A DNA stretch of 64,000 bases, from assembly GCA_004764695.1 (NCBI GenBank), contig SMSO01000031.1, positions 9,712,037 to 9,776,036 on the forward strand, written 5' to 3'. Shown here in pieces: positions 926 to 64,000 of this stretch. The translations under genes were made by a program, and so were the position numbers. Origin of the DNA: Schizochytrium sp. TIO01 (taxonomy: Eukaryota; Protista; Bigyra: Labyrinthulomycetes). How positions within the stretch are numbered: position 1 is the stretch's first letter; each line of letters opens with the position of its first letter. The notes beneath the pieces are model-generated. The model did not search any database, was not told the DNA's origin, and worked only from the letters and a program-made list of their open reading frames with translations.

Positions 926-2206
926 TTATCTCCACTTGTTGCGCATGTCTATATTTGCTGACATAGGTCGCTTGGGAGGTGAAACCTCTTCATTGCACAA
1001 AGTCATGAAATTCGAGGAAGCAATCACCTCCTCCATAGCTCGCTCGCGTTCTTGAGAGTCCTGAGGTAGATTCTCCGGGAGGAGTATGTTGAAGATGTTG
1101 TGCACAAGTGAGTGTTTCAGCGAGCGGTCGCTCTTGGTGGTCGCGGTCAAGGCAGGGGATGCATTCACTTCAATGAGCCAGACCTTGAGGTTTTCGTCGA
1201 TGAGTAGATCATAACCATAACACTCGAAACAATGTTTTTCATTGATGATGACATTTTGAACAGACTTGATAGAATGTAAAATTACACTTTCAAGCTCTTC
1301 GAAGAGCCTTGCGGTCGCATCAGCACCGTACATTGCCTTAAGATACAAACGTAAATTTGCCAGACTCCATTTGCCGCCATGGTGTTCGTTGTAATCCTCA
1401 TTATGTTTTTGCACAGCAACATTAGTCAAATGCACAAAATGATTGTCCCGATCTGCAGCATTTGCAGAGTACTTTTCGTTGCAAAATCGAGCAAAGCCGT
1501 CCTGGTACAAGAAGGCTTTCAAGGGTTTGTACGATGTCACGAGAACATACATGCGTAGGTCAAACTTGCGTCCACCAATGAGCAAAGGTCTTTCAATGTA
1601 CTTTGATATGACATAGACATCTTGCCCATTCCCTTTAGATGCCCATTTCTTAATCTGATGGAGTTTGGTAACCAAAAAAATGCCAATACCACGTGCTTTT
1701 GAAGTTGGTTTCATTATCCACATACTGTTTGGGGCGCGACGAAACTCCTCAAAGAATAGTGAATAGTCGACAGGCAAAACATAGGTAGGCGGGAGAAAAC
1801 CGCAAGCTTGTGAGTTTGCCGCTGGCGATGAGTCTGCTGTGGATGACAATCCGCCTTGCGCTTGTGTTGACAGGAGCTCTTTCCGGTATCGTTTGATGTT
1901 CTTCACCATGAGGTCTTTGCGAGTGAGTTCATAGTGGTTTGGGAAATGGTTTAGCAGTTGTCCGTCACGAAGACGCACATTTGAGTCTGGGCTGAATAGT
2001 TGCTTGACGCTACCCACGTTTGCCCAATAAACGTGCCAGTCCGGGTCCGAGTCTGCACAGCGCTCCCATCCTCGTCGGTCGAAACAGCCCAGCAGGCATT
2101 GCTTGTCAAAGTCCATCTTCCAACGAATCACTCGTGAAGCAGGGGGGATCGCTGCTAAGGAAGCAGAGGTGCCCAAAGCCGGTGCATTGGCTGAGTTTAC
2201 GGTCAT
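926..2206 (-). CDS. TTLL1: Tubulin polyglutamylase TTLL1-like (tubulin-tyrosine ligase family)
   Basis: NHFPNHYELTRKDLMVKNIKRYRKE, WIMKP..ARGIGIFL, KFDLRMYVLVTSY, HLTNVAVQK, CFECYGYDLLID and WLIEVNASP. First ATG at 2206; intronless. Confidence 0.9.
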   Translation of the reverse strand: MTVNSANAPALGTSASLAAIPPASRVIRWKMDFDKQCLLGCFDRRGWERCADSDPDWHVYWANVGSVKQLFSPDSNVRLRDGQLLNHFPNHYELTRKDLMVKNIKRYRKELLSTQAQGGLSSTADSSPAANSQACGFLPPTYVLPVDYSLFFEEFRRAPNSMWIMKPTSKARGIGIFLVTKLHQIKKWASKGNGQDVYVISKYIERPLLIGGRKFDLRMYVLVTSYKPLKAFLYQDGFARFCNEKYSANAADRDNHFVHLTNVAVQKHNEDYNEHHGGKWSLANLRLYLKAMYGADATARLFEELESVILHSIKSVQNVIINEKHCFECYGYDLLIDENLKVWLIEVNASPALTATTKSDRSLKHSLVHNIFNILLPENLPQDSQERERAMEEVIASSNFMTLCNEEVSPPKRPMSANIDMRNKWR

Positions 2207-2595
2207 TCTTCTTTTTACTCTGCACCTCAAGTTCGCGTTCGGCGGCCAAGGTCAAGAGGTATTACTACAGTATTTTTTTCAAAAGTTTTTTTCTTTTATT
2301 TGATTTCTTGGGCTCGTTGAAGGCTTTAACAGTAAACTAGAAAAACGGTTCTTTCACTTTGAGTCACAATTCCTAAACAGGCTTTGAAATTTATAAAAAA
2401 AGATTTTAAAAACATCGGTTCTTTAACCGAGCGAGCTAGCTACTACCTACTATGAAGATTTGGGGAGAATTTTAAAAAGTATAATGAACATGGTGGCCTG
2501 CATGGACTCTTTGCTTAAAGGTTGGATCGACACAACATGCTAAACGGAGGGCAGCTACGACCAAGATGCGGGGAAAAGAGATAAATCTGAAGTTA

Positions 2596-4731: not shown

Positions 4732-7700
4732 CTTCAATCGCTCCGAAATCTGTCAATTAATTCTGACAAACTCGATTTGATCCGTCATTTACTACTACAT
4801 CAAAGCAATGCGCCTGCACCTATTTGTTGGATCTTCTTCGACTCTTCACCATCATTGATACATCATTAGGTGCCATACATTATATTATTCAATGTTATGA
4901 AAATATATCATTATATTGAAGGTTTGCATTCCCGACATTATATAGAGACCATAAATATTGTTATGAATATATTATGGTAGGATCACGTTCTATCTATGTG
5001 ATAATGCTAGACATGGAGTATTCTCTTCTCTTTCAAAAGATTGATACACGGGGTGCGGAATTAGTGAGACTAGGATTTAGTCTCGGACCCGGCGCGGAAC
5101 TTGGGACGCCGTGGCGGGGTATGCTGTGGGCCTGAAAGTAAGCTCTCAGGCTTGCTTGCTTGCAAATATAAGGCTAGAATGTATTGAGGAGTTGGAGTGA
5201 CGGAGTGATCATATTCTGTAGAGCATACAATTATGACGTAATTCACAATTCGTACTACTATGCTTCTTGACACTTGGGAACTTGTACTTGTGGAAAATGC
5301 ATACTTAGCCATCTATCATTGCATCGAGTGCCGCAGGGTAACAGAAAGACCTAATGCTTGGACCCATTAGGTAGTATTAGATAATAATAGGAGTGATGGT
5401 GTCGTCTGTATAAACGAAAGTGACTTATGTAAATTAGTGTTGATTATATGGTCTAAATAAAGCCCACGGATTTTCATATGCTGCTATTTTGCAAAGTTAG
5501 AAAGGGGTTGATTTCAGAAAGTGGGGAACGTTGCCAAGATTGACTGTATGATTATTGTATTTATACATTGAATTGGTCCGATGCTGGGTAGGTCATATCG
5601 TTGGTACTAGTAGTAGATAGGTGGATTCTTTGTTGAGAGGATGTGAGTTTTGCAGCAGATAGTGGGCTTTTACAAATTAGCGAGTATTTCATTTGGAAAT
5701 ACTTCTCAAAAGGGAAATCTTAACATGACATGTCACGCCTAATTGCAAACGCAACTTCGTAGATAGCGATTTAAGCTCTCTACGATTCATTCTTAGACTA
5801 CGAAAGATTCTATGGATTTAACACATGTTTTTCTATGGATTTAACACATGTTTTTCTTAGTAGGACGCGAACAGATCCAATATTGCCACTCACCTTATGC
5901 CAGGATTATCATGATGAAGATAAAGCACGTGCAAAAACTGCAACCAACGAACCGTTCTATAAGTACATTTCGTATCTTTCTCTCAAGTTTTGTGTATGTT
6001 TTTGTATATATAATTTTTAAATAAATGTAATATATAAAGATTATTGATGTAAGCTGTCCTTTTCCTTTTTTTCTTATTTCTTTTTCTATGGAATATGATC
6101 ATGAGAAATTTGTATGCGTGCGAGAAATGATAAAGGTTGAGGTGAACAACTTCACAATACATCGCAAAGCTTGCATTCTAGTTGGCGCTTGGCGCTTGCG
6201 CTATTATGGTACGCAAAAACCGAAGCTTTGTGACAACTAATTCATGAGTATATCAACTATGCGAGGTATTGTAACGAGATTGAATTCATTCAACCGCGAA
6301 TAAAAAAGTATCAAACTCATTTCTGCAATTTTCTTTTTCGAAAACAACCTCGAAAAAATGGAACCTATTCCCAGTGTTACACTTTCGAAAGAAAAAATAT
6401 CTTTCTTTCTTTTAATTTAAATAGTCGTAGCAAAGTGAAGTGGGTCGTGTCACAAAGATCAAGTGCTGTTGTGGTCTCAATATAACGCTGACTTTATAAT
6501 GTGCAGCCGACAATGGAAGGGGGATTGTAAATATAAGCAGAAATTAGTGCTGGCCTTTGTGTTTCTGTCTGCCTTTGGAAGCGAAGCGAAGAGAAAGCTA
6601 TTGGATATCTATTTATTATTTCATATATATAAATCAAAATAACAGGTGCTACGATGAAAGAAGGGCGTGTGCTCAAATAGTTTTTAAGATTGATTGCCCA
6701 ATTGAAGTCTTTTTCTTTTTTTTTTAAATATATTCAGTTTTTTGCGCAATCTTTATCGCAGTTTCCTAGTGCTTCAATGCTTGATCGTAAACAACCCTCA
6801 AGGAAGCGACGCATCTGCGCTCTATTGCCCCGTATGCACATTTGTAACTTGAAGCAGCGAAGATTTCAAGCAGAGATCGCTTGCAAATTATATTGAACTC
6901 GATTGCTAGGGGGTGGTTCCATTCCAGTTTCATGGAGGGGCTAAGGAATCACGTGGCCTGCACTACACTCTCAATTTCAAGTTTTTTTCTCGCTGTTGCT
7001 GCTACTGCTACTGCTGCTGCTGTCACTGTCAAGTTACAGGTTGCGCTCCTGACTGCCAAGATATTACGACGCTCAGGCCGGAGTTTGGTAGTACCATTTT
7101 GAGCGCTAAGATTCCCCATTATTCTTATTCTATAGCGCAGTTAACAGTTGCACTAAGAGTGTTATAACGAGCCATTATGATGATGCCACGAGAGGTTTTT
7201 ACCTTCACTGCTACCGTTTCGACTATACATGGGCTACTGAAGTATTAAGCGCAGGCTGACTAGACGGTGAGAAAGGCCTTTCTGCAAGCACCTTCGGGTC
7301 CGAGCACCATGAAGCTCGCTGAGCAGCCTGCGATTTCGGGTTCTGGCAGGTCCCTGTGCTCTGGTTCCCACTCTGCGGCGCAGCCTGCGTAGGTCGCCGC
7401 ACCCAGGGCGACTTTTCGCACCAAGCTGTCAAACCAGCAAAGCGCCCAGCGAAGCGCAACGGAGCCTTGACTGTCTGTGCCTTCCTCGGCTCTTTCGGTT
7501 CCAGGAGGGTGCTACGGCCTGCAAATGTAGCACTTTTCGGAATCCTCTTAATCTTTCAATGAGAAGCATTCTTCTAACTTTTAAATTATTTATTATTATT
7601 ATTATTTTTAAATAGTGTTTTTTAGTGACGCATCATTTCTACCAAGAGATGGAGAATTAATTAATTCTTGGGAAACCGGTCTTCATAGGACACCCTTAGG

Positions 7701-8217
7701 CTTAAATAGGCCCCGACTTTGCGGCATTCTTTTGCGTGTGCTTGTGAAGTTATTAAGGAGCGAGCTAGAGGGTGAGTTGGTGGTAGGACCTGCTATAGGC
7801 TATATACCACCTACTTCCTCCATGACACGGTGAGAGATTCCTTCTTTGGGTAAGTTGAAACATTATTATTATTGTTCTAACCAAAATAAAAATTGGTTTC
7901 GAAGTTGAGGTTTCTCTGAATTACTAGGTAGTATGTATTTATAGCTAGGAATTTCTTTGTTTAAAATATGTATATTTGATTAGTTTATAGAGCTACTAAG
8001 TCGAAAGTAGAGCAGAGCTATATTATAATGAATGCATTTGCATTTGGTTGGTGAGATTTACTTTCTCGAAGCTATTTAATTAAAATACTACTATGGAGGG
8101 GTTCTGAAGAAGTACTCATGAAAGTGAGATATGCTTTGACTTGACCCAACTCAATCATCACAAGCATAGATAGGAATGTGAGAATGCGTATTGCTAAATC
8201 ATACCTAATTTGTTCAA

Positions 8218-8290
8218 GATTGCTCAAGGCCTCTTTGATTGTTCAAGGCCTCCTCGATTGCTCGAGGTCTCTTCGATTGCTCAAGGTCTC
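8218..8290. repeat. Short tandem repeat, ~19-bp unit x4 (gattgctcaaggyctcyty)
   Basis: Four consecutive imperfect copies with no spacers. Confidence 0.7.
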
Positions 8291-11200
8291 TGATAAGGTT
8301 TCTTCTGTTTCACTGGATAGGTACTTTCTAGACGAGCGTGTGAGTGAGTATGTGAGAGAATGGGTGAGCGAGCGAAGTTTAATTCTATGGCATTGTGTGC
8401 TTTGTTTGCGCGTGAGCGAGCTGGAGTTACACTTGCTCGGACATGGCAGCGGTGGAAGGGAGCCAAGCTCAAGTTCCCACGTTGTCGTAGATGCGTTGCG
8501 TCAAGAGGAGGTTGGAGTTCTTTGTGGCCCGTCAAAATTCCCTTGGTGCTGCAGACTCGCGGGTGGACTTCAGCGCGAAGAGCATTTATATAGGTAGGTA
8601 CTACCTGCTACGTATTACAATTTACAAAATTTACATAGTAGAGTAATAGAAGGGTCATGGCACCAGAACTGGGAGTGTTATTCAATTCTAATCGTGTTGT
8701 ATCGTAGAACTTGTTAAAGAGTTTGAGCAGAGAGCTTTTCAACTCTAGCTAGTAACCTTCAGGTTGTCATCACAAGCAGCAACAGCAGTAGCACGAATAC
8801 TGAGGTTTGCTGGCTTCAAGTTTGTCGCATTCCGCATTTTAATTTTTTTATTATTAATTAAAAAATTAAAATAAGAATGCCTAGCTAGACAAGAAAAAAA
8901 TCGACCAAATACAAAGACAATGACCATAGACCAGGATGGTAAGAAACCTTCACTGCTATTATCACCGAGGTGTTGCTGCTATTGTCACAGCAGAGAATAT
9001 GCGATGAACTCCGAAGACGCTGTGTTTGCCGCTGTCCGCCAACTGTCTTCTTCTGGGCTCCAAAGCGGCGGTTGAGTTCTCTTGAGCTGGAAAAGAACTT
9101 GAATCGATGTGCTAGCTTTAATGAGTCAGTAACTAGGTAGTACTAGTGGTACTCAGTCCATTTCAATTCGCAAATTATCAAGGTGTCACTGTAGTCGAAC
9201 CATCCCTCGTTTATGACTATGGATCATGGTTTCGTGGTTTCATCTTTCGCTCTGCGGCGACGACCACGTGGAGGGAGTTGCACCTACGAAGCTGAGCACG
9301 CACCTTCAAAGTATTAACTACCACGAAGAGATTGACGGAGAAGGTTGGCGACCTTTTGGTTCAACTTGTGTGCCGTTCTTTCATTAATGAAAGTGGTGGT
9401 AGCACGCAAACACTGCACTGCTACTGCTGGCTATGCACTCTTAGCAACATTAAAAACAAAACAAAAACTTTTTCAGTAGGTAGGTACGTAAGTACCTACC
9501 TACTGAGCTCTCTATATTGGCGCTCAGCGAAGAAAATGCTGCACGGAGTCGAGAAAAGTTGCAGGAAACATGAAAAGCTCGAGCTGGAGGTACCGTGGTC
9601 GCAGCGAGCGAGCGAGCAACCAGGCAGGCGAACGGCCATGACAACGGAAAGGGAGCCTTCCTTGCAGGTACCTACTTTCCGTAATAAAAACAAAAAACAA
9701 AAAACAAAAAAACAAAATAAGCTTTTCCAAAGCTTTGGCAAATTATATTTTTGTTTTTACTTTTACCAACTGTACCTGCCGTGATAATGGAAATAAAATT
9801 GTTCTGAGTCTTTAAAGAGGTTTTTCTTCCAGGGAGGCGAATAAACAGCACCTGATTATTATTCTTATAATTTATTCCCTATCATTAACTTGGAATCGCA
9901 AACTCATAGTTGAAAGGACTCGGAGATAGAAACCCACCAACATTAGCGAATGAGATCAGTGCTCACGGTTCTCAAGAAGCGAATGAACTTATTTTATTGG
10001 CCAGAGGCTTCCCATTGATGAAAACACCACCGTGGGGTGAACGACTTTCTCTTCAAGTTGATGCAAGCGGCTGAGCACTGCGTTTTGTTGCGCTTGCTTG
10101 CCGGTACGATAGGCCGTTTGTTGAGCGGTGCTTGCTTGTTTGTTTGTTTGTTTGCTTGTAGCTTGCTTGCTTGTTGGTTCTTCGACTCTCTGCTTTCCCG
10201 GCATAGCTACTTCGCACAAAGGTACCGCCTTCGTAAGAATACAGCTATGTATCTCTTATACAATATATATTATGTTACTTGTCAAAAGTTTCTCTGGCAG
10301 CTGGAAGAGAGAAGCGGTAGTAGTAGCAGCATTGGCACAAGAATGTTGAAGTTCTTGTGTTGTCGAAGTTTGTTGACGCACTGCCACCCTCAGCTCAGAC
10401 TGAATTGGACTCGCGAAGAGGTTTGAGAACGATGAATCTTGGCGTTGGGGCTTTTGCCTGCCTCACATGCCCAGGTCTTCGAGGTTGCTCGCGAGTCACG
10501 ACTCTACGGGTGTGACTGAACTCCTCGCGCAGCGTCTTGCACAATTCAAGGGCTGGCTAGCTATAGTTAGGTAGCTGTATTAGCTAGCGATTTAGCAGCC
10601 AAGTCCGAATCCACGGTTGCCATGGCTTGGCGATTTTGTAGTTTCTTGTGCTTTTTGCTGGTTTAACCAAACTGCTTCTTCGACGCTCGCCATAACGTAC
10701 TCTTGATTGATCAACCAATACATCAATCAATACATCAGTGTCGGCCTTTGTTCGAGTTCCTACCGCGAGCCATAGATCTAACCCGGATTGAGCTCGGGCT
10801 TGGCCTCTTGACGGCAATATTGTCCTTCTCTTGGATGCGAACTAGGATTAGTAGGCGTACTGTTTTTGTTTTCCTGAGTTCTATAAGAGCTGAGAAATCG
10901 ATTGTTTGCTTTCAACTCGAGTCGTGCCACTTTTGGCAGGACGGCCCATTTATGCATAAAGTGCATGCTAGTCGGAGCGCTAGTGCAAAGCCTAACAGTG
11001 CCCAGGATGGAGGAATCAGTCGAAAGAAAGAAAGAAAGACAAACTTCAAAGTCGGAAGCGAAAGGCTCAGTTCTCACTGATTAGACCAAAGCACTGGACA
11101 GTTCTATCGTCACTCGAGGACCTGTGTGTGTCTTTTCATACTACTGGACGCCTCGGAGATAACGTTCATGTGTAGCACCCGCAAAGCAGCACGCTAGAAA

Positions 11201-11951
11201 GCATGTAAACAGGACATCACTAGTGTGCTACTATCCCTTGAATGTGAAGAGCCTGCATTGTCTGGAGCAATGAAAATAATGCAGAAGAGCATATTTTGTA
11301 CCTTCTCTGAGTCGTTGCTTACCTTTTAAAGTTACTTTATTTATATTTTAATCATCTCTATATGTAATAATTTTTAATTATAAGTAAACGATCATACTGA
11401 TTTACGTAAATAGTAGGTAGTAATAAGGATGATGAATATAAAAATAAATAAAAATAAAAAAATATTTTTTTTTCTCTAACTTTACTTGCTAGCTAGACCA
11501 TACAGAAATGTCTCAAGACTTTCGAAGATGAGAGGAATACCCTAATACTCTTCGTGTTTACCACTGACTGCGATGTTCTGAATAGCGCTAGGTAAGAATT
11601 CTACGTTCTTGAAAAGAACTGGCAAATGCTGCAAGTAGTAATAAGAGGAGGGAGAGAAAGGAAAAAAGAAAAAGAAAAAAAGGGAAAAAGGAAAAAGGAA
11701 AAGAAAAGAAAAAAGTGATTCTTTGATTCAACATTAAATCGATTGATCAATCAGTCAGACAGTCAATCAATCAATTAATCGGTCGATCAAATTTTGAATT
11801 GCTCGATTGAGCGGGCGGCGCCTTTGCAGGTGCTCGTCTTGGCACTCGGTGGAGGTCCTTCCCGTGCTCGCCCTTTGGTAGGGTACCGAGAGCACGCAGG
11901 TCGCGACCACGCTTCGTGTTGGCAAGTGGCCCTCCTTTAAAAACTGGAAAG

Positions 11952-44497: not shown

Positions 44498-47400
44498 TTA
44501 ATCCAACCTAAAATTTGCGCCAACAATATCTGGTGTTAGCAAAGGTGACAATAAGTCTTTCAGAACGAGTCGAAGGTTTCCGTCCTGAATATTTGCATTC
44601 CAGTACTCACGCAAACGTTCTGCGCGGAGCAACTGCCATGCCTCACGAATCTGCTCCAATGAATCAGCAGAATATCCAACACGGGTAAGTTTTCTTGGGC
44701 AGTTACTCACGTGAGCATGGCAAACAAAGCTATTCTTAGAGCTAAATTCAAGACACCAAGCGCAAAAAAAATGCCCACATGTACTATAATGACATTTCAC
44801 AGCACACCATGCATCGAATTTGTAGAACCACAGATGGCAGTTCGGACAACATATGCTCAAGATCTTCTCTTGAATATGCAGTAAATGCCGCTGTGCGTCA
44901 CTGTTCTGTTCATCTGGACGTGGAACTTCTGCAATGCGCCTTTGGATCTCTTCTTCCGCCCAAACTGCTGCTTCATTTTCTACCTTCATCTTCGCGATCA
45001 ACAAAAGATGATTCAAAGCGGTTGGCGCAAGACGGATGATCTCCTGACCTGATATTCTTCCACTACATTCAGGTTTCATGCATGCGATTGTCCCATCAGC
45101 ATCCACTCTTGCAGTAGCTAGTGGTTGTGCTGCCTCTTCTACTGCAGATTCGATACAGTCTCTGCAAAGGAAGTCTCCCTCCTCGCAGCTCGTGCCCTCG
45201 GAAAGCAGATGCTCCTCCATGCATACTAGACATATCTTGACAGGGACCTTAGGAGCTCCAAAAGCTTCATGTTGGAGTGCTTGGCGAGCGGTTGGACGCT
45301 GACCAGGGTCTGTTGCTGTAAGCGCTTCGATAAGCGCCTGCATTGCAACGGACCGCTCAGTAGGATACAGCTCCATTAAGCTGATACCCACAGAGTACAT
45401 GTCTATCGATGTTTCAAACTTATCTACATGCCCATTCTGCAACTCAGGGGCAATGTACCGTGGCGTTGCTTGAAGTGATGTGTACGTAGCAGTGTAGTCC
45501 GCGACCTTGATGCCGTCAAAATCGCCGATCAATGGTGTCCCGTTGCTTGTGAGAAAAATGTTTTCTGGTTTGATGTCACAATGCACAATGCCGTGGGTAT
45601 GTAAATCCGCCACACCAATAAGCAGGCCCACAGCAAGTCGGTCACGCGCTGCTTTGCCTTCGTTAGGATGACTATCAATCCACCTGGCCAGATCACCTTG
45701 TTCGTAGAAAGGCATGACGATACAGCCACGCGGTACTCCATTGGTCATGTCCACAAAAGCACCAGTGATACGGATCACGTGCTGTGACACCACTTTGCCC
45801 AGATTAGCGACTTGTCTGTAGAAGGTTTTGGATTGACTTAGATGCCCAAGCTGAAACTGTTTGAGAACCAGAGTTCTGCCATCTCCATCAAGAACCTTCT
45901 GGACAGTCTTACCTCCTCTGGACGCTAGGAGATCATCGACAGGCTTGAAGTCCGAAACTGCCACATTCGTCAGCCACAGGTCAGAACATGCTACTTCAAA
46001 AAGACCCTCTGCACTTACGTGAAGCCTTTCCAGCCAGGCTCTATTTTGCAGCAACTCTGGAAAATGTTCCTGCGCGTGTTGTAGAGTCTCAGCAAGCTTA
46101 TGACGAAAAGCTTTGCTAAGGTCGATCGGGTTGCCTTGGGAGAGAACAAGCTCTTGTTTCTTTATTCTATTTCTATAGTGCTCTTGTTCTTCCTCATCCA
46201 AGTCCTCTGCCTCGAGTTCTTCTTTGGCTCTCTTTAGACTTTCTGTTGCTTTCCTCGACTTGTCAAGTTTCTGGTATAACTCCTCAACATCGGAGGTACT
46301 TGGTTTTTCGAAACCCAGTACTGCATAGTCATACAGTTCAGAGACCTCTTTTGATGTGCACTTGCTCCCTTCATTCAACACAGTGTTTTCAGCGTATAAT
46401 TCGAAACGAGCGAGTGTTGAACTTATTGCGCAAAGTATTTCGGACAATTGTGCACTAAGAGTATCTTCTTGTAGAGCATCGCTCTCTTCTTGAAGAGCGC
46501 GCTCAAGTTCAGACAACTCGGGTTCTAGCTCCATGGCCTGCTCAGGTGTCCTAAGAGCAACCCATAATCCATCACCGAGTTCTAGCTCAGACAATCGAGA
46601 GACAACGCGTTTTACAGCTTGCTGGCTTCGTTCGCCAATGTTGGTCGGTCGACCTTCTCCACACCTCTTGTACCCTTCCACGCATTGGACAGCCTGAACA
46701 ACGAGTTCTTGGCAATGTTTGAAGTCATCTGTGCTGGTCTCTTCAGTGACTGGTGCAAGATTGATCTTTAAATCTCGTACCAAACTTTCAACTCCCACTT
46801 TGAACTCTCGCACTGCACTCTCATCACTTTCGCAAAGGTTTGCGTGAACCCATGGGTACACGACCTGCAAAAGTGAATGCATGCGACTTCGTTCGGCGTT
46901 TCGCTTTTCGATGAGGCTAGGCAAGCCATCTGCAGAGCTTGCACGAATCTGGTCTTGTAGCGCGTCAATACCCTCTTTGGAGTTCTTGATGTCAGCGGAA
47001 ACCTGTCGCAACTTCACTTGGCCAAAGTAGCCCTGAATCGCCGGTCGAACGAATTCCTCAAGCAAGGCAATCCCAGTCTGCAGGGAGTTTCCTCTGACCC
47101 CGCCTCGGTCCGCGCGCAAGTCCGAGACTTTCTTAGCAAGCTGCACCACATCAGCAAAACTCACTCTGAGGTGGACAAGAAGACGTAAACAAACGAGCAA
47201 AGTGAAGACATTTGAAGCAACAGAGGCAGAAGCAAAAGTTAGGATCTCCAAATATCTCAACAACACAATTTGTGGAATGAATGATCACACGATCCCTAAC
47301 AAAAAACGCATGAACTTACCCAGATATGTTCTCTCCAGGAGAACACACCCTTTCGAACAATTCTTTAGGGGTTCCAGAAAAATTGTCATAGCTGCATTTT

Positions 47401-50400
47401 GTAAATGAATGTGAATACACGAATAAAAGAGAATAAGAGCGCTTGTTAGAAAAACGATGAACGCATCTAAAGACGGCCGCTCGCAAGTTCATATGGAGAC
47501 ATGGAGAGAACCAGCGAGGGCAAGGCTCTGCGCAAGCTGGGAATAGCAGCAGAGGGGACGGAACTTACTAGATTCTAACAGAAGGACATGCTTTGTGCAG
47601 AGACTTTGCGACGGCCTTTGCGCCCTCCGAGCCAATGTTGTTCTTATTAAGACTGTGAGTAGTATAAATGAATAAGTTTGTTTTGTTCATTCGTTGTCAG
47701 GAAAGACAGGTCCAGTCAGTTGATCCTGTTTTGTTTTGTTTTTCCTCACAATAAAAAGCAATCACCTCTTCTTCTGCTGCTGCTGCTGCTGCTGCCTATC
47801 AAATTATATAGATTTCCTTCTTCTCTTTGTAAAAAAGAAAAGACTTCTTTGCCTTTCTTTGCGTACCCAACTACGTAAACTACTTAGGTAGTGTACCAGC
47901 AGTACTACAAACACCAAGCACTGAAAAGAAAGAAAGAAAAAGCTTGGTCCTGACTATTACGATAGCTTTCCCTCGTGGATGATTCCACAAACGTACTTTA
48001 AAATTTGAAGGTTCTTGCATCCCTCGAGTGCCTTTGCGACGGCCTTTGCGCCCTCACCGCCAATGTTGTTGTTGTCAAGACTGTAAGTATAAATGAATAA
48101 GTTTGTTTTGTTCATTCGTTGTCAGGACAGACAGGTCCAGTCAGTTGATCCTGTTTTGTTTTGTTTTTCCTCACAATAAATAGCAATCAGCTCTTCTTCT
48201 TCTGCTGCTGCTGCGTATCAAATTATATAGATTTCCTTCTTCTCTTTGTAAAAAAGAAAAGACTTCATTGCCTTTCTTTGCGTACCCAACTACGTAAACT
48301 ACTTAGGTAGTGTACCAGCAGTACTACAAACACCAAGCACTCAAAAGAAAGAAAGAAAAAGCTTGGTCCTGACTATTACGATAGCTTTCCCTCGTGGATG
48401 ATTCCACAAACGTACGCTAATTCTTGAAGGTTCTTGCATCCCTCGAGTGCCTTTGCGACGGCCTTTGCGCCCTCATCGCCAATGTTGTTATACTGAAGTC
48501 TGTGAGTATAAATGAATAAGTTTGTTTTGTTCATTCGTTGTCAGGTAAGACAGGTCCAGTCAGTTGATCCTGTTTTGTTTTGTTTTTCCTCACAATAAAG
48601 CAATCAGCTCTTCTTCTTCTGCTGCTGCTGCTGCCTATCAAATTATATAGATTTCCTTCTTCTCTTTGTAAAAAAGAAAAGACTTCTTTGCCTTTCTTTG
48701 CGTACCCAACTACGTAAACTACTTAGGTAGTGTACCAGCAGTACTACAAACACCAAGCACTCAAAAGAAAGAAAGAAAAAGCTTGGTCCTGACTATTACG
48801 ATAGCTTTCCCTCGTGGATGATTCCACAAACGTACTCTAAAATTTGAAGGTTCTTGCATCCCTCGAGTGCCTTTGCGACGGCCTTTGCGCCCTCACCGCC
48901 AATCTTGTTGTTAAAAAGACTGTGAGTATAAATGAATAAGTTTGTTTTGTTCATTCGTTGTCAGGACAGACAGGTCCAGTCAGTTGATCCTGTTTTGTTT
49001 TGTTTTTCCTCACAATAAAAAGCAATCAGCTCTTCTTCTTCTTCTGCTGCTGCTGCGTATCAAATTATATAGATTTCCTTCTTCTCTTTGTAAAAAAGAA
49101 AAGACTTCATTGCCTTTCTTTGCGTACCCAACTACGTAAACTACTTAGGTAGTGTACCAGCAGTACTACAAACACCAAGCACTAAAAAGAAAGAAAGAAA
49201 AAGCTTGGTCCTGACTATTACGATAGCTTTCCCTCGTGGATGATTCCACAAACGTACTTCAGATAAGTCAGGTTATTGCATCCCTCGAGTGCCTTTGCGA
49301 CGGCCTTTGCGCCCTCTGAGCCAATGTTGTTGCACCCCCAACCCCCCCCACCAAGACTGTGAGTATAAATGTATAAGTTTGTTTTGTTGATTCGTTGTCA
49401 GGAAACACAGGTCCAGTCAGTTGATCCTGTTTTCTTTTGTTTTTCCTCACAATAAAAAGCAGCCAGCTCTTCTGCTTCTGCTGCTGCTGCTGCTGCTGCT
49501 GCCTATCAAATTATATAGATTTCCTTCTTCTCTTTGTAAAAAAGAAAAGACTTCTTTGCCTTTCTTTGCGTACCCAACTACGTAAACTACTTAGGTAGTG
49601 TCTACAAACACCAAGCACTAAAAAGAAAGAAAGAAAAGCTTGGTCCTGACTATTACGATAGCTTTCCCTCGTGGATGATTCCACAAACGTACTTTAGATG
49701 AGTCAGGTTCTTGCATCCCTGGAGTGCCTTTGCGACGGCCTTTGCGCCCTCACCGCCAATGTTGTTGCACCCCACAAAGAACGGATACCTCCGAGACATC
49801 CCACCAAGACTGTGATTATAAATGAATAAGTTTGTTTTGTTCATTCGTTGTCAGGAAAGACAGGTCCAGTCAGTTGATCCTGTTTTGTTTTGTTTTTCCT
49901 CACAATAAAAAGCAATCAGCTCTTCTTCTTCTTCTTCTTCTGCTGCTGCTGCCTATCAAATTATATAGATTTCCTTCTTCTCTTTGTAAAAAAGAAAAGA
50001 CTTCTTTGCCTTTCTTTGCGTACCCAACTACGTAAACTACTTAGGTAGTGTACCAGAAGTACTACAAACACCAAGCACTCAAAAGAAAGAAAGAAAAAGC
50101 TTGGTCCTGACTATTACGATAGCTTTCCCTCGTGGATGATTCCACAAACGTACTCTAAAGTTTGAAGGTTCTTGCATCCCTCGAGTGCCTTTGCGACGGC
50201 CTTTGCGCCCTCATCGCCAATCTTGTTCCCCAGAAGACTGTGAGTATAAATGAATAAGTTTGTTTTGTGTTCATTCGTTGTCAGGAAAGACAGGTCCAGT
50301 CAGTTGATCCTGTTTTGTTTTGTTTTTCCTCACAATAAAAAGCAATCACCTCTTCTTCTTCTTCTGCTGCTGCTGTTGCCTATCAAATTATATAGATTTC

Positions 50401-52984
50401 CATCTTCTCTTTGTAAAAAAGAAAATACTTCTTTGCCTTTCTTTGCGTACCCAACTACGTAAACTACTTAGGTAGTGTCTACAAACACCAAGCACTAAAA
50501 AGAAAGAAAGAAAAGCTTGGTCCTGACTATTACGATAGCTTTCCCTCGTGGATGATTCCACAAACGTACTCTAAAGTTTGAAGGTTCTTGCATCCCTCGA
50601 GTGCCTTTGCGACGGCCTTTGCGCCCTCCGAGCCAATGTTGTTGCACTCAAGACTGTGAGTATAAATGAATAAGTTTGTTTTTTCATTCGTTGTCAGGAA
50701 AGGCAGGTCCAGTCAGTTGATCCTGTTTTGTTTTGTTTTTCCTCACAATAAAAAGCAATCACCTCTTCTTCTGCTGCTGCTGCTGCCTATCAAATTATAT
50801 AGATTTCCTTCTTCTCTTTGTAAAAAAGAAAAGACTTCTTTGCCTTTCTTTGCGTACCCAACTACGTAAACTACTTAGGTAGTGTACCAGAAGTACTACA
50901 AACACCAAGCACTGAAAAGAAAGAAAGAAAAAGCTTGGTCCTGACTATTACGATAGCTTTCTCTCGTGGATGATTCCACAAACGTACCCAAGATGAGTCA
51001 GGTTCTTGCATCCCTCGAGTGCCTTTGCGACGGCCTTTGCGCCCTCCGAGCCAATGTTGTTCCAACCAAGACTGTAAGTATAAATGAATAAGTTTGTTTT
51101 GTTCATTCGTTGTCAGGAAAGACAGGTCCAGTCAGTTGATCCTGTTTTGTTTTGTTTTTCCTCACAATAAAAAGCAATCAGCTCTTCTTCTTCTTCTGCT
51201 GCTGCTGCCTATCAAATTATATAGATTTCCTTCTTCTCTTTGTAAAAAAGAAAAGACTTCTTTGCCTTTCTTTGCGTACCCAACTACGTAAACTACTTAG
51301 GTAGTGTACCAGAAGTACTACAAACACCAAGCACTCAAAAGAAAGAAAGAAAAAGCTTGGTCCTGACTATTACGATAGCTTTCCCTCGTGGATGATTCCA
51401 CAAACGTACTCTAAAGTTTGAAGGTTCTTGCATCCCTCGAGTGCCTTTGCGACGGCCTTTGCGCCCTCATCGCCAATCTTGTTCCCCAGAAGACTGTGAG
51501 TATAAATGAATAAGTTTGTTTTGTGTTCATTCGTTGTCAGGAAAGACAGGTCCAGTCAGTTGATCCTGTTTTGTTTTGTTTTTCCTCACAATAAAAAGCA
51601 ATCACCTCTTCTTCTTCTGCTGCTGCTGCTGCTGCCTATCAAATTATATAGATTTCCTTCTTCTCTTTGTAAAAAAGAAAATACTTCTTTGCCTTTCTTT
51701 GCGTACCCAACTACGTAAACTACGTAGGTAGTGTACCAGCAGTACTACAAACACCAAGCACTAGAAAGAAAGAAAGAAAAAGCTTGGTCCTGACTATTAC
51801 GATAGCTTTCCCTCGTGGATGATTCCACAAACGTACTACAATTTTTGAAGGTTCTTGCATCCCTCGAGTGCCTTTGCGACGGCCTTTGCGCCCTCCGAGC
51901 CAATGTTGTTCCTTTGAAGACTGTGAGTATAAATGAATAAGTTTGTTTTGTTCATTCGTTGTCAGGAAAGACAGGTCCAGTCAGTTGATCTTGTTTTGTT
52001 TTGTTTTTCCTCACAATAAAAAGCTTCTGTTGCTGCTGCTGCCTATCAAATTATATAGATTTCCTTCTTCTCTTTGTAAAAAAGAAAAGACTTCTTTGCC
52101 TTTCTTTGCGTACCCAACTACGTAAACTACTTAGGTAGTGTACCAGAAGTACTACAAACACCAAGCACTCAAAAGAAAGAAAGAAAAAGCTTGGTCCTGA
52201 CTATTACGATAGCTTTCCCTCGTGGATGATTCCACAAACGTACTTTAAAATTTGAAGGTTCTTGCATCCCTCGAGTGCCTTTGCGACGGCCTTTGCGCCC
52301 TCATCGCCAATGTTGTTGTTACGAAGACTGTGAGTATAAATGAATAAGTTTGTTTTGTGTTCATTCGTTGTCAGGAAAGACAGGTCCAGTCAGTTGATCC
52401 TGTTTTGTTTTGTTTTTCCTCACAATAAAAAGCAATCAGCTCTTCTTCTTCTTCTGCTGCTGCTGCTGCCTATCGAATTCTATAGATTTCCTTCTTCTCT
52501 TTGTAAAAAACAAAAGACTTCTTTGCCTTTCTTTGCGTACCCAACTACGTAAACTACTTAGGTAGTGTACCAGCAGTACTACAAACACCAAGCACTAAAA
52601 AGAAAGAAAGAAAAAGCTTGGTCCTGACTATTACGATAGTTTTCCCTCGTGGATGATTCCACAAACGTACTGCAGATAAGTCAGGTTCTTGCATCCCTCG
52701 AGTGCCTTTGCGACGGCCTTTGCGCCCTCATCGCCAATTATTTTCCAACCAAGACTGTGTTTGTTTGTTTGTTTGTGAACAAGTGAGAGTAAGTATATGC
52801 CATTTCCAACTTCTTCATTAGTGCCACTACTAGTTCAAAACTATTCTTCTTCTACAAAGCTGACTACTACAACACATCGACGACGCGGTGCCTCCTTCAT
52901 CTTTCATCTCCTCTCTCCATCGTGAACTTACTCTATCTCCGTCGTATCTTGTGTGATGTCCTTAATGCTCTTTGCCACAGTCAT
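44498..52984 (-). CDS. Variable-LRR gene B: N-cap + 13 LRR exons + helical/coiled-coil region + Ser/Thr kinase + RING1/Rcat (RBR-like) zinc fingers; ~1310 aa, 16 exons
   Basis: Exon 1 is 52984-52932 (MTVAKSIKDITQDTTEI). LRR exons: 52754-52671, 52327-52244, 51920-51837, 51493-51410, 51071-50988, 50653-50570, 50237-50154, 49809-49693, 49356-49258, 48919-48836, 48499-48416, 48080-47997, 47652-47569. They are bounded by CAG and GTACGT (last one GTAAGT), consensus xLxxNxIGxEGAKAVAKALEGCKNLxxL. Linker exon 47391-47320. Terminal exon 47165-44498 is in frame with the 922-aa ORF (VLK, HCDIKPEN, DFDG, APE; CLVC..C..CRDC..CMKPEC; CPNC..C..CGHFFCAWC). Confidence 0.88.
47570..52760 (-). repeat. Tandem array of ~420-bp units x13 (intron + LRR exon), with a length-variable (CTT)n(CTG)n tract in each intron
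   Basis: Read directly. The intron sequence is unrelated to that of the 385-bp family. Confidence 0.97.
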
Positions 52985-53080
52985 CGTGTTGCAGCAGTGA
53001 GTGTCACCTTTGATGGATGGATTGATCAATCGCGTTGGTTGTCTTTGCTTTGTCTCAGTCTTCGCTTTGCGTTGGCACTC

Positions 53081-53083
<3 letters not shown>

Positions 53084-53117
<34 letters not shown>
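53084..53117. repeat. (GA)n microsatellite about 100 bp upstream of the gene B start codon
   Basis: About 17 GA units, read directly. Confidence 0.9.
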
Positions 53118-53120
<3 letters not shown>

Positions 53121-54237
53121 TTTGAGTCTTCGCTCGCGCTGCTGATCAGGAACGGAGACTTCTGCTCTCTCTTCTTCTTCTCCTACTTCTTCTTCTTCAC
53201 AGCAAGGAAGGAGGATCGGGCGGACTCCTCGCGATGCCTCGCAAGTGCTTCTGCAGACCAAGCCTCGCCCACGAGTAACGAACGCGTGGAGGGGTGTGGC
53301 GCGCGAGAGGTCGCGGGGGCGTGGATATCGTGCGTGCGCGCTGCCTCGTGTTGCGGGTTTGCGAGGATGGCTGGCTTTGGCGAGAGTAGTAGGTTGCTGG
53401 GTGTGATAGTTGGTTGTATACGTAGGTTAAGCGCTGTTAGTGTTTTCGAAGGTCCGTTGAGTCAATTTTTTCCTGAGAGCGCAAGGTGTGAAAATGGATT
53501 CTGCTCTTGAAGAAAGACGAGGAGGCGTTGTGCTTCTACCAAGTCACACACAATGCAGAACGTGGTAGGAAGGTCCCTATCCATTTGTGATCGTGTATGG
53601 GTGCTATTGTTTTGGTTTGATAATATATAGCATTGAGTAGGGTTTTGTTGAGCAAAAGGAGGTCGAGTTTCGATTGTCATGGCGTTTTGTGTAACGAGTA
53701 GTAGGCAAGAAGAGGTCCTTGTATCGGGGTCAATTTGACAGAAGAGCCAAAAACTTGTAGTCTTTTCGTTGTTTTTGGTGAGGTCTTGAAGCGACGAAAA
53801 CTCGTAACTGTGTCATACAAGAAATAAATTGCTTGTCGGGAGTAGGTTTTTGTCTATCAGTTAGTAATAGGTTTGTGATGCGATCTATGATAGATTATCT
53901 TGAGATCGGGAAAGCTTGGGAGAGAATGGAGAGCAAGTCGGATTTCAAAGATGTGTTGAGTTGCTTTACGGCTTCAACATGAAGAAAGCAGAGAGGCGCT
54001 TTCAAAGATCGGAGCTACTGGTGGCTGCAACCAAAGGTGTGCCAGAAAGAAGGGAAGGAAAGTTTCAAAAAGAGGAGAATCTTTGCCCGAGAGTAGAGAT
54101 GCCTAGTTGCCTTTCTTACAGTGCTTGTAATCCTCTTCGGGCAGGTTTATTTTCATGAAATTAATCTTTAATAATATTGTGATATCAGCCGTCGAGTTGC
54201 TTTCTTTTAGTGATAGGGTAAAAAATAAAAGGAAAAA

Positions 54238-54355
54238 ACATTCAACACCGGGGCTTCGCATGCAGTCCCCTATCATACTACTGACCCGGCCCTACGCGAC
54301 TTTACTTCTCAGTGCGAATGAGATGAGGTGTTACCCGCGTGGTATGATCGAATGT
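54238..54355 (-). rRNA. 5S rRNA (copy 2)
   Basis: Same sequence as 18032-18149, with an oligo-T terminator. Confidence 0.93.
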
Positions 54356-54804
54356 GATTAGGAGGTGGTGCATGATGCATTTATACTCACTTACTTACTT
54401 TTTTGATGACTTAGGTGCAAGATAGATAGTATTAGGAGAGAGTGGTAGTGGAACCTGTACAGGAAGCATCCCTGCAAAAGATATTCTAGGAGTAGGCTTT
54501 AGGAAATAGGAATAGTCTTGAAAGAGCGAGAAAGAAAGGAGGTCAGCACATGCAGAACCCGAGGCTGAGTAGGCAAGGTTAGGTTCGTAATAGTAAAATA
54601 TCCTTTCACTTCGGGAGCACTAAAAAGCATCTCCTTCTTAGAGGAAACCATAGTAACTCAGTAAGTGCACAACTCTGTCATCGACTTGCAGCTACGTCCA
54701 GCAGGTTCGAAACCTTCTGCAACGACTGGGACTGTGCCACGAGCTTAGCTGAAAAGGCACACGCACACGCTCACTGGTTAAGGTATAGATCGTTACTTGC
54801 TGCG

Positions 54805-59993
<5,189 letters not shown>

Positions 59994-62900
59994 AAGAAGT
60001 TTTAAATACCTTAGTTTTTGTTAAACCTTGTTGCTGGTCTGTAGGACTATGTGAAGGATATTACTATTTTATAGATTCATAGGATTATGAATGTGCTAGA
60101 AAATTATTAATTATCATAATATAGAGCGTGTAGGTGATGGAAATATTTTCATTGAATATTAAGATTGACAATTTAAGAAGCGAATAAATTAAACGCTGCA
60201 AGAGTCATAGACAACATTCTGAAAGACGTTGGAGAACAATACACAATTAGTGACCGCGCATGCAGCAGCCAGTGATTTTCAAGAAGTGAAGTGAAAAATT
60301 GTCGTAAAGCTCAAATCCCCGATGTTTGCATTTAGAAACAATGATTGAGGGTCATTGTATGAATAAAATATAACCTGACGTTAAATAATGCCTTATAAGT
60401 CCATAATTCTTCATACACATCCTGGAGTGTGAATGTGAAGGTAAGTTTAGAAGTCGTTTTCAAGTTTATCAAATCCCTGCACCCAAATTTTTGGTTAGTA
60501 TTTATTAAAGTATTACTCGAGCTTCAGCTTTTTTAAGCACATGGTTTGCTCGTGACGACCTTTCCAAGTTTGAGAAGGCTCGATAAATTATGAAAATGCA
60601 ACAACTTCTGAAGCAACGTCTATGGGGAAGCTTGACCATTGTTTTTCTGTTTTTCTATAGTGTCAGACAAAATATTTAATGACACATGTGATTTAATAAC
60701 TAATAACTTGTTGCAGAATGATCAATAATGAGAATGTGAATCCCTTCTCCAACAAGGATGGCGTCGTTGTGCATTGTTGTGCATTGAGCGAAAATGATGT
60801 TGCAGGCCTCATTCAGTACCAAAGCCATATCTATTCAGGTGTCTCACCCAAATGTAAATTAACGCCACCCTTCAATGCGAAATCTATGTAATCAGTTTGT
60901 CTGTGTCTAGAAGCTCAATAAACTCAATACTATCCTTTTCTCTTTCACACTCTTCATTAGGCCTCACAGACCACCTTACTAGAGCTCGTTCTCTTGTCAG
61001 ACTGCCTCTGTACGGTCCATTGCAGAAGCTAATATGCAAAAGCTAGATTTAGCAAACCTAAAATGTTGTATTCTGGTAAAGTATTTATGATATAGACTGT
61101 ATTCAAATAAAAAAGCAGCTAGAAGAAGAAGCGCGTGATCACGCAAAAGCTCGAGCAGTCAATAGTATCATGGTAATATCCTAACAAAGTGTCTGGTGTA
61201 CTTTAATGGCTCATTTCTGGTATAATCTGATCACTGTTTCGATAAAACTCAGTAAGCAATCTCTTTTTGAACGCAGATTCTAACGCCGTATATCGAGCGA
61301 CATGAATGTAAGAGCTGCGTACGGCATTCAATCCACCAGGCAGCTGGCGCCCAATAGTGTCATGAGATGGACTCACGTCGTATAAATTGTCTGGAAGAGC
61401 AGAGCCTTACCGTGGATGCATTGCCTTCCTTCCTCCTTTCATTTCACGACCATCATTGCTTGGACGGCTCCACATGCTAGTCTGCTTCACAATCTTACGA
61501 CGAAGGTAATTGTTTTAGTTTATGCACATTCATTCTGAAAGCAAAGGGATTGTAGTATATTAATTAGCCGTGGCGTTATATAGTGCAACGTAACTTTCTA
61601 GTTTCGAGATGGCCTGATTTTGTTTAATCGCAAGAACAAATTCGTACACCAACAATCTACGCTCGAATGAAGCTGAACGAATCACTCATATCCGGCATAA
61701 AACTCGTCTGAAAATCCAAAGCATGCAACACTGATCAGAACTGGATCTCAAGAAACCCGAACATTTATGAATCAATGACAGTGACGGGTGTCTAGGTGTT
61801 CGTAGCTGTACTTAATAAGTGTCTACTGGGCATAACATCATTCTTGTAAGCTCTGCTACTCCGATGATAAGCTTGTAGATATACTAAGATGGAGTCGAGC
61901 AGCATTGCATCAGCCTCTAAACTTGCCCTCAAATCCTCACGTTCAAAGCAACTCTTTCTTCTTTATCTGGTCCCAACGTTCATCTTGCTTACACAACTCT
62001 TCAGTACTCTCACTCTGACCAAACATTTGAAACACTTTGTGAATGTTTACTAAGATTTTCCCAAATGGCTTAGAACCCATTTTTCTTCTTGGACCCTTTT
62101 CACTCTTAGTGCACTGTTTTGCGACTCATTCTAGACCTCATCCGATTCCTTCTTTAGTTCAATCAGTGTCGCGTTTCCTAGTTGATTGGAAGGCAATCGG
62201 AGAGAAGAAAGAAGGGATCTGAGCAAGGATAGGCTAGCCTTCAGAATGGTGAACGAAGAGGTTGCGTGCGTGGAGCGCAGTCGCAGCTCTTTGAGAAAAC
62301 AAAGTTCATCAGAGTCAGTTAGGTTAGCTATGTGTGGGCTAAGAAGACTTGGCTTATGTCGCCGGTGAGACTTGACTGATTGATTATTTTGTGTGTTTTG
62401 GGCATGCTTGCTTGTGGAGCTTCTTCTTCTTGGAGAGGTGTGCAATTTCCTTGTTGCACTTAAGCGTGCACAATAAGAGGATTGCGTTTTAACTCTGAAA
62501 GATTTTCGATTGAAAGATATTTCTTTAAACTTTACTTTTTAAATGGAAAAGTAAAAGAAATCTTTAACTTGAAAGAAGTAAAAGTAGTTATTATATTTTA
62601 AAAAAAAATTATAAATGGAGTATAAGGGGAATGCATTCATTAGACATCTTGTATTGAAACGGTCTAGAGGGCGAGGACCTCAGTAAGAATTATCTTTTCT
62701 AACGTAGTTGTAATGACCTTGGGTCAGCAGGTGAGGATGCAAGAGCTTTCTTCGATCTTCAAACTGCCACAAGCAGCCTGTGACAAGCAGCCTTGGACTG
62801 AACGAGATTATGATTGAGACGTCCCTGTAGATAAACCCCTGTGAACGTGCACATACTTGGTTGGTAAGTTTCAATACTGTGCAAGGGAGGAGTTATCTTT

Positions 62901-63771
62901 CGTGTAGTTCGAAATCGGCTAAGTTTTTCTTTACCTTTCTATTTGTTGCTATCCCTGTTCAGGGTATTTTCAATTTTTTTTCAAGTCATAAATATATATA
63001 TGTCCTTATTCGTCTTTAGTATCACAGATACTTCCAACTGTTCATGGCAGCAAACATGACCCAAGGTACCAGATCCAAGTTTTTGGAAGAAATTCCCCGC
63101 AGCAATTTTCACTTTTTAAATTTATAGAAATTCCGGTACAAATATTTGGAAATTTCCCAAATTTGCCACCATTGGATTTGGTCTTTCAAAACATCCAAAA
63201 CAAGCAAACACCTACAATATCCATCTTCGGTTTCTGCATCGGACCGGCCCTTGTTCAACGCGGCCACTGAACGGGAAACCGTCAGACAGAACAGAACAGT
63301 TGGCAAGTTTCCAACTGTTTGCCGGTTTTGTGAGTTCTCGAGGTGGCGCGAGGAAGGGTGTGTGCGGACGGGTTCAACTCTGTTGGACTTGTGAAGCTCG
63401 AAAATACTTCCTGATTAATGCGCTAAGATTGGATCTGAGACAGCGTGTGCCGTTTGGGTACATTTTGAAGCTGTTGCGGTTCTTGAAGCTTCGTATTGTT
63501 ACCGTAGATCTTCGGCAAAGTTTTGATCTGAACCGAAGGCGTGAGGACCGTTGCCTGTGGATGAATATTTCTTCAGAAGCGTGGGCAGCACTTTCACATT
63601 CGAAGTCTTCCCCTAGGGCTGTCTGATTTAATAAAAAGACATTCCTTCTGGGCGTGAGATTGGTCAAGGGTTGAAAGGACAAATTGGCTGAGTTTGAAAT
63701 ACACTTGGATTGTTAAAGAAATTTTACTTAGAATGGTTTTAGTACCATTTTAAATGAAATAAAGTATAAGC

Positions 63772-64000
63772 AATTCTGGGTTGATCCCCTCCCCCAGTAG
63801 TCACTTGCTCGGCTCAAAGATTAAGCCATGCATGTGTAAGTATAAGTGCGATGTACTGTGAGAACTGCCGAACGGCTCATTATATCAGTAATAATTTCTT
63901 CGGGTGTTGCTTTTATATGGATACCTGCAGTAATTCTGGAAATAATACATGCTGTAAGAGCCCTGTATGGGGCTGCACTTATTAGATTGAAGCCGATTTT
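63772..64000 (+). rRNA. 18S rRNA 5' end (second copy, truncated by the window; contains indels)
   Basis: Matches 30527 onward (CTCAAAGATTAAGCCATGCATGTGTAAGTATAAG...) with several indels in the first ~130 nt. Confidence 0.85.

Follow-up and report, generated by a model that had tools for sequence, protein, structure and literature searches.

The 64,000-nucleotide stretch of the Schizochytrium sp. TIO01 genome analysed here (the window) contains on its minus strand a locus of 16 exons, in which an array of leucine-rich repeats (LRRs) precedes a helical region, a protein-kinase domain and a tail related to the RING-between-RING (RBR) ubiquitin ligases. Judged by its sequence, the locus is a real, intact, multi-exon protein-coding gene. 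It is probably best explained as an LRR-kinase-RBR-like member of a family of at least 50 paralogs, the product being, by inference, most likely a cytosolic receptor. The exon plan was found spliced in the mRNA of a paralog, and the array corresponds to a class of chromosome-end repeats, the LORE-TEARS, published earlier as non-coding DNA.

Exon plan, paralogs and transcripts

The gene consists of an ATG mini-exon, 13 exons with a single LRR each, a linker exon and a large last exon (Table 1). All introns begin with GT and end with AG, and all junctions lie in phase 2, each exon contributing one base at its start and two at its end to the split codons. Domain searches were run exon by exon; the exons were joined only for a local check of length and stops, which gave 3933 nucleotides and 1310 codons with the terminal stop only. 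Eleven of the LRR exons measure 84 nucleotides, one 117 and one 99, and they share the conserved core GEGAKAVAKAL. A sequence-only reading of this DNA had taken the 922-residue open reading frame (ORF) at the 3′ end to lack a start of its own and had connected it, through its CTCAG acceptor and the 72-nucleotide linker, to 13 LRR exons and an ATG exon at 52984. Both points were borne out: the first ATG of the ORF does not occur before residue 95 of the terminal exon, protein conservation among the paralogs begins at the acceptor, and all coordinates match. The variable junction motifs given there (DLGWKI, HLRNNN ... NLNKNN) are exactly those encoded by the exons, the two insertion exons are those at 49809-49693 (117 nucleotides) and 49356-49258 (99 nucleotides), and the stated absence of a signal peptide or transmembrane segment agrees with the lack of any hydrophobic N-terminus or transmembrane-like segment (maximum Kyte-Doolittle 19-mer, 1.34).

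Out of 335 first-look candidates, the 888-codon exon was counted at least 51 times in the genome, and 44 of these copies are full-length and free of stops, with 57-84% identity to the window copy. LRR-exon arrays were found upstream in all 12 paralogs whose upstream DNA was examined, and the ATG and donor of exon 1 are kept in six paralogs with 90-99% nucleotide identity. The exon plan is beyond chance because it recurs in this manner upstream of 12 out of 12 paralogs and because exon 1 is kept in six. In the case of the eight close paralogs (L013-L020), the arrays comprise from 4 to at least 20 units of ~425 bp, and the same cap exon closes the array in all eight. Exons of 99 nucleotides resembling LRR exon 9 are also present in L017.

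Splicing was observed directly in transcripts of the MMETSP collection. Transcript P0274 has a complete ORF with LRR_6, Pkinase and the same type of tail. It maps to contig C13 of this assembly with 100% identity in 13 exons, namely an ATG mini-exon, eleven 84-nucleotide phase-2 LRR exons and one big exon, and its product is 40% identical to that of the window terminal exon over 619 residues. This mRNA proves the same splicing plan in a paralog of the same genome. The exact match also ties the window's organism to the strain behind MMETSP0958-0961, almost certainly Aurantiochytrium limacinum and taken here as ATCC MYA-1381, an assignment with which the LORE-TEARS layout described below agrees. 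A second transcript, P0003, encodes LRRs, the cap repeat of LRR exon 13 and then a linker homologous to the 72-nucleotide exon of the window.

The ratio of non-synonymous to synonymous substitution rates (dN/dS) of the terminal exon is 0.25-0.30 in comparison with eleven close paralogs; by part, it is 0.15-0.24 for the kinase and 0.25-0.37 for the helical and tail parts. With five paralogs at a synonymous divergence (dS) of ~1 or more, values of 0.16-0.22 were obtained for the terminal exon. These ratios indicate that the family members are functional genes, not decaying repeats, and that the effector half is under purifying selection.

Table 1. Coordinates of the LRR-kinase-RBR-like gene and its parts in the window (nt, nucleotides; AF2, AlphaFold2)
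Feature	Position	Strand	Remarks
Exon 1 (53 nt)	52932..52984	-	ATG, 17 codons and 2 nt; GTAAGT donor
LRR exon 1	52671..52754	-	84 nt, phase 2-2; Pfam LRR_6 E 0.067, exon alone
LRR exon 2	52244..52327	-	84 nt; LRR_6 E 1.6e-4, exon alone
LRR exon 3	51837..51920	-	84 nt
LRR exon 4	51410..51493	-	84 nt; LRR_6 E 1.2e-3, exon alone
LRR exon 5	50988..51071	-	84 nt
LRR exon 6	50570..50653	-	84 nt
LRR exon 7	50154..50237	-	84 nt
LRR exon 8	49693..49809	-	117 nt; 11-codon in-frame insertion at the variable 5′ end; LRR_6 E 3.9e-3
LRR exon 9	49258..49356	-	99 nt; 5-codon Gly/Trp-rich insertion
LRR exon 10	48836..48919	-	84 nt
LRR exon 11	48416..48499	-	84 nt
LRR exon 12	47997..48080	-	84 nt
LRR exon 13 (capping repeat)	47569..47652	-	ends ...AKSLHKACPSVRI
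Linker exon	47320..47391	-	72 nt
Terminal exon	44498..47165	-	2.67 kb, 888 codons and stop; CTCAG acceptor
All-alpha region, ~400 residues	45965..47165	-	AF2 helices only; no recognised family or fold
Protein-kinase domain, non-RD	45245..45964	-	Pfam Pkinase match at nt 45365-45907
RBR-related tail	44501..45262	-	RING1, helical linker, Rcat-like module, C-terminal helices; no IBR
RING1	45053-45232	-	within the RBR-related tail
Rcat-like module	44696-44851	-	within the RBR-related tail
TGG (Trp) at the family's putative catalytic-Cys position	44807..44809	-	next codon, 44804-44806, is Cys
Tandem array	47604..52738	.	period 427 bp, 12.1 copies (Tandem Repeats Finder); unit is one LRR exon and one intron

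The repeat array and its chromosomal setting

Each LRR exon alone matches positions 10-24 of Pfam LRR_6 with E values from 1.6e-4 to 0.067, and the rest of each repeat is encoded by the preceding exon. In the spliced relatives P0003 and P0274, LRR_6 is matched at E 7e-45 and 1e-33, respectively. From their sequence, the repeats have the form of ribonuclease-inhibitor-type LRRs of 28 amino acids, LxxLxLxxNxIGxxG followed by a predicted helix. Comparison of the units within the window array revealed p-distances of 0.022 for the twelve introns, 0.046 for the exon cores and 0.374 for the exon ends, taken as 13 nucleotides at the start and 11 at the end of each LRR exon; the differences at the ends are almost all non-synonymous. 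Over 64 units from 8 genes, variation rises sharply in the opening and closing codons of the exon and in a single Asp/Ser/Gly codon, and is flat elsewhere. If the split junction codon is included, these peaks correspond to the x positions of LxxLxLxxN, that is, the exposed residues of the LRR beta-strand on the concave face. Among 76 units, 63 distinct 5′ variable 15-mers were found, and 3 of the 12 in the window recur in another array.

All 13 LRR units of the window copy are intact. In the eight paralog arrays, 16 of the 76 LRR units carry indels of 1-2 nucleotides or stops, all of them inside the hypervariable exon ends. These defective units were found in L018 (C7:1068100-1077100) and in L013-L015, and 12 of the 16 belong to one array of at least 20 units, that of L018. 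Two readings fit them: pseudo-exons like those of Ectocarpus, or errors of the consensus at variable sites of a tandem array. Targeted mutagenesis in L018 was considered and set aside, as it is not separable from errors of consensus polishing at variable tandem sites.

The window is the last 64 kb of its contig (C30) in a 64-Mb assembly of 37 contigs, and the gene lies 17 kb from the contig end. It sits in the spacer between the 28S gene and the following 5S gene, between two subtelomeric ribosomal DNA (rDNA) units. The rDNA of the window comprises an 18S gene at 30527-32311, then 5.8S, then 28S at 32697-36050; 5S genes at 18031-18149 and 54237-54355, a second 18S gene from 63773 and four tRNA genes are also present. 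Elsewhere in the genome, 22 of the 43 family copies on contigs of known length are no more than 150 kb away from a contig end, and several of the "internal" family clusters adjoin internal 18S copies. The close subfamily is tied to rDNA/LORE-TEARS regions.

Nearly all chromosome ends of Aurantiochytrium limacinum carry LORE-TEARS interspersed with subtelomeric rDNAs (Collier et al., preprint 10.1101/2023.06.15.545109). Units of ~421 bp that separate two consecutive 5S genes form their "Group 5", and units of ~385 bp between 5S and 18S form their "Group 0"; the LORE-TEARS were published as non-coding, without database similarity and of undetermined, possibly structural role (10.1101/2023.06.15.545109). 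The 427-bp array of the window fits Group 5 in its period and in its position between two 5S genes, and the 385-bp arrays of the window (18605-26840 and 54805-59993) fit Group 0 in size and position. The difference is that the Group 5-type array is here the LRR-coding part of a gene. At least the Group 5-type LORE-TEARS are arrays of LRR-coding exons and make up the LRR halves of 50 or more related genes, which changes how this published genome feature is to be read.

Exon 1 and its flanks (52760-53130) are 99% identical to L013:3443-3811 on contig C34. The terminal-exon protein of this paralog is only 84% identical to that of the window copy, and the near-identical 5′ end points to a recent exchange between chromosome ends.

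Three further observations concern the surroundings of the gene. The rDNA-flanking spacers at 17985-30746 and 54194-64000, each with 5S, a 385-bp array and the DNA upstream of 18S, are only 84-88% identical to one another. Positions 1-17985, on the upstream side of the first 5S gene, lack an equivalent in 36050-54194. On the plus strand at 40988-41677, ~3 kb from the 3′ end of the gene, lies a 229-residue ORF with 91% nucleotide identity to 45643-44834; it repeats, in inverted and truncated form, the kinase C-lobe and RING1 together with part of the Rcat-like module.

Helical region, kinase domain and RBR-like tail

For the first 400 residues of the terminal exon, the AF2 model contains helices only, with a predicted local distance difference test (pLDDT) score of 83.7. 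Foldseek returned no match to this region at E <0.1, the best one, to alpha-pore-forming toxins at E 0.13, being not significant; VIA-align gave Z ≤9.4 with designed or generic helical bundles, below the helical noise level of the tool, and the language-model search Atlas gave no match. An MLKL-like or pore-forming reading of the region found no support in these searches and was dropped.

The kinase domain is recognised by Pfam Pkinase at E 1.3e-29. It keeps the beta3 Lys (VLK), the catalytic Asp and Asn of HCDIKPEN, the Asp of DFD and APE, and the motifs of the catalytic loop and of the zinc ligands are kept in 17 of the 17 copies aligned. The domain fits no named kinase group, as its PDB matches with E values of 1e-13 to 1e-17 span CDK, NEK, PAK and BAK1. 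On these sequence comparisons the domain represents a distinct and constrained kinase clade, for which activity is not to be assumed.

The tail of 254 residues is not recognised by Pfam, where Sina_RING was the only hit (E 0.18) and the IBR and Rcat models gave no score. A profile built from 29 family tails and searched against PDB matched RING1 of RNF216 at E 3e-7 and Rcat of CUL9 at E 1e-4, and also parkin and ARIH2. The AF2 model of the tail has a pLDDT of 87.9, and its top Foldseek matches are all RBR ligases, RNF216 at 5e-5 followed by HHARI, ARIH2, HOIL-1 and parkin. Atlas likewise places the tail beside IBR/Rcat_RNF216 clusters. RING1 follows the pattern C-x2-C-x11-C-x3-(H/D)-x2-C-x2-C ... 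C-x4-C, which would supply the eight zinc ligands of a cross-brace; the ligands are kept in 17 paralogs, the fourth being Asp in the window subfamily and His in others. The Rcat-like module reads CPxC ... GC ... C ... FCxxC. There is no IBR, since tail residues 72-135 form predicted helices without a Cys/His cluster. The designation "RBR-like" is therefore supported by three methods of comparison and modelling, yet the tail fails one defining feature of RBR proteins.

The architecture proposed in the sequence-only reading thus stood for the LRR array, the linker, the helical region, the Ser/Thr-type kinase and the RBR-like zinc modules, and has to be corrected for the missing IBR. Its remark that an NTPase domain is lacking agrees with our search of the 922-residue ORF, in which Pfam gave no NACHT, NB-ARC or Roc-COR match at E ≤1.

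Weighing of explanations and comparison with known systems

As a receptor, the product would use its LRR arc to bind a variable ligand in the cytosol; the kinase-like and ligase-like modules would then pass the signal on by phosphorylation, by ubiquitin transfer or as a scaffold. In the window copy the ligase-like module may be inactive. Support for the splicing model of the window copy is comparative, and it is strong. Several points weigh against this explanation as a whole. The best database protein is only 65% identical, though the database includes MMETSP transcripts of the same organism. In the kinase, the alphaC Glu is Gln and DFG is DFD in all family members aligned, so that the enzyme may be inactive; these departures extend to Hondaea and dinoflagellate proteins, and alphaC has Asn in one paralog. 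Among 21 distinct paralog sequences, the window copy alone has Trp at the putative catalytic Cys. Its last 118 residues (44501-44854) are 59-70% identical to those of close paralogs, against 84-91% elsewhere; dS is also raised in these codons, with dN/dS of 0.26-0.50, and the best other DNA match to this divergent 3′ segment in the genome is 81%. In these comparisons the 3′ end looks like a mosaic with an older, divergent segment rather than the product of decay. Moreover, we infer the ligand, the localisation and the output alike. Ubiquitin transfer by the window copy is doubtful on the residues it encodes. Of the sensor-effector with phosphorylation and ubiquitination that the sequence-only reading had put forward, the sensor-effector role appears reasonable; Gln, DFD and Trp leave the output unsecured.

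The same departures have to be considered under other explanations. The window copy is unlikely to be a silent or archival member of a subtelomeric family, intact in frame but rarely or never expressed, perhaps losing function and at most a recombination donor for expressed paralogs, by analogy with other subtelomeric contingency families. A silent copy would agree with the location 17 kb from the contig end between rDNA units, with the absence of proteins above 65% identity from a database in which transcripts of the organism are included, with the Cys-to-Trp change confined to this copy, with the divergent 3′ segment and its 81% best match, with the mosaic relation to a paralog that shares 99% identity at the 5′ end but 84% in the big exon, and with the truncated inverted copy 3 kb away. 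Nevertheless, the 16 exons, splice sites and 1310 codons are all intact, dN/dS has an overall value of 0.27 with 0.26-0.50 still obtained for the divergent tail, and no LRR unit of the window is defective, compared with 12 of 20 in one paralog array. A serious alternative for the mechanism, if on balance a rather improbable one, is that the protein serves as a non-catalytic sensor or scaffold composed of a pseudokinase and a zinc-finger interaction tail. The Gln and DFD substitutions occur in all family members including distant ones, the G-loop is degenerate, the tail has no IBR, and Trp replaces Cys in the window copy; on the other side, the beta3 Lys, the Asp and Asn of HCDIKPEN, the Asp of DFD and APE are strongly constrained and do not vary, and the Cys that lines up with the active-site residue of RNF216, CUL9 and parkin is retained by at least 90% of the wider family and by every other paralog examined. 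The view, in line with the published account of the LORE-TEARS, that the 427-bp repeats are non-coding structural DNA of chromosome ends, with untranslated LRR exons and a separate kinase ORF, is largely refuted and essentially excluded by the open, in-phase 84-nucleotide segments with canonical splice sites, each matching Pfam LRR_6, by the confinement of variation to binding-face codons between introns that are 98% identical, by the big exon without a start codon of its own, and by the paralog of the same plan that is spliced exactly so in its transcript.

A broader proposal, which we regard as speculative and quite unlikely, is that the subtelomeric, rDNA-linked LORE-TEARS arrays constitute a diversity-generating receptor system, comparable in a protist to variable immune receptors and perhaps directed against resident mirusviruses. 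Recombination would keep the introns and repeat cores ~98% identical. About eight LRR binding-face codons are almost unit-specific, with in-frame insertions and, in some arrays, frameshifted "pseudo-exons". Every exon is phase-symmetric, and therefore unequal exchange, patch conversion between chromosome ends or exon skipping could yield new LRR-kinase-ligase receptors at a high rate. The organism offers a culturable and tractable host with resident mirusviruses for tests of receptor function.

The closest known system is that of the exon-per-LRR genes of Ectocarpus, where candidate immune receptors of the LRR-ROCO and LRR-kinase types have one 72-nucleotide exon (24 amino acids) per LRR and these exons are shuffled (Zambounis et al. 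2012, PMC3341825; PMC11378527). Their binding-face residues are under positive selection and non-coding LRR-like units are interspersed (PMC3341825; PMC11378527). Both organisms are stramenopiles, and in both one short exon encodes one LRR, exon number varies among paralogs, shuffling or mosaicism occurs, the binding face is diversified, non-coding LRR-like units are interspersed and a cytosolic architecture with enzymatic output is predicted. The marks of exon-per-LRR genes, symmetric one-LRR exons, variable exon number among paralogs and binding-face variation, were all found here. The present genes differ in their 84-nucleotide exons, which encode 28 amino acids of the ribonuclease-inhibitor type, in having a true 427-bp tandem array because the introns are nearly identical, in a non-RD kinase and RBR-like output instead of Roc-COR, and in their place in subtelomeric rDNA spacers. 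Exon-per-LRR candidate immune receptors are thereby extended from brown algae to heterotrophic stramenopiles.

Other likenesses are more partial. With the RBR E3 ligases, the tail shares the RING1 ligand pattern of RNF216 and a second module that aligns with Rcat of CUL9, parkin and ARIH2; it differs in the ~65 helical residues that replace IBR and, in the window copy, in the Trp at the active-site position. A repeat sensor fused to signalling enzymes is also found in NLR and ROCO (LRRK) proteins and in the IRAK/Pelle/RLK families, with which the non-RD (HCD) kinase agrees as well, and animal NLRs have LRRs of the ribonuclease-inhibitor type. Non-RD (HCD) kinases are linked with pattern-recognition signalling. 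However, the present protein has no NACHT, NB-ARC or Roc domain and its kinase belongs to no named group. In the case of the lamprey VLRs, a large genomic repertoire likewise supplies short LRR modules whose variable residues are on the concave face, but the modules here are ordinary germline exons and the predicted protein is cytosolic with enzyme domains.

The distribution of the effector modules was examined in public proteins. At E ≤0.001 the tail module was found in 1128 representative proteins. A kinase lies directly upstream in 21 of 41 high-ranking tail matches, and LRR_6, ankyrin, WD40, ubiquitin or helicase domains are present in others; the pair of kinase and tail is elsewhere joined to Ank, WD40 or ubiquitin domains. 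Hondaea fermentalgiana GBG34335.1 is composed of LRR, Ank, kinase and tail, and GBG34857.1 of Ank, kinase and tail; the dinoflagellate Durusdinium trenchii and the oomycetes Pythium and Phytophthora are further sources of the tail. In the public records such relatives are annotated only as "hypothetical" or "protein kinase, putative", and literature searches, including those on thraustochytrids, found no paper describing the LRR-kinase-RBR-like architecture. The sequence-only reading had known of no other organism with this combination of domains; P0274 and GBG34335.1 contradict it, as both carry LRR_6, kinase and tail. A previously unnamed effector pair is defined by these proteins, the non-RD Gln/DFD kinase and the RING1-Rcat module without IBR. 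A shorter branch of the family was also observed (C33:2558427-2559314; L029 and L034), in which LRR exons and linker lead directly to the RBR-like tail, with neither helical region nor kinase, as in transcript P0003.

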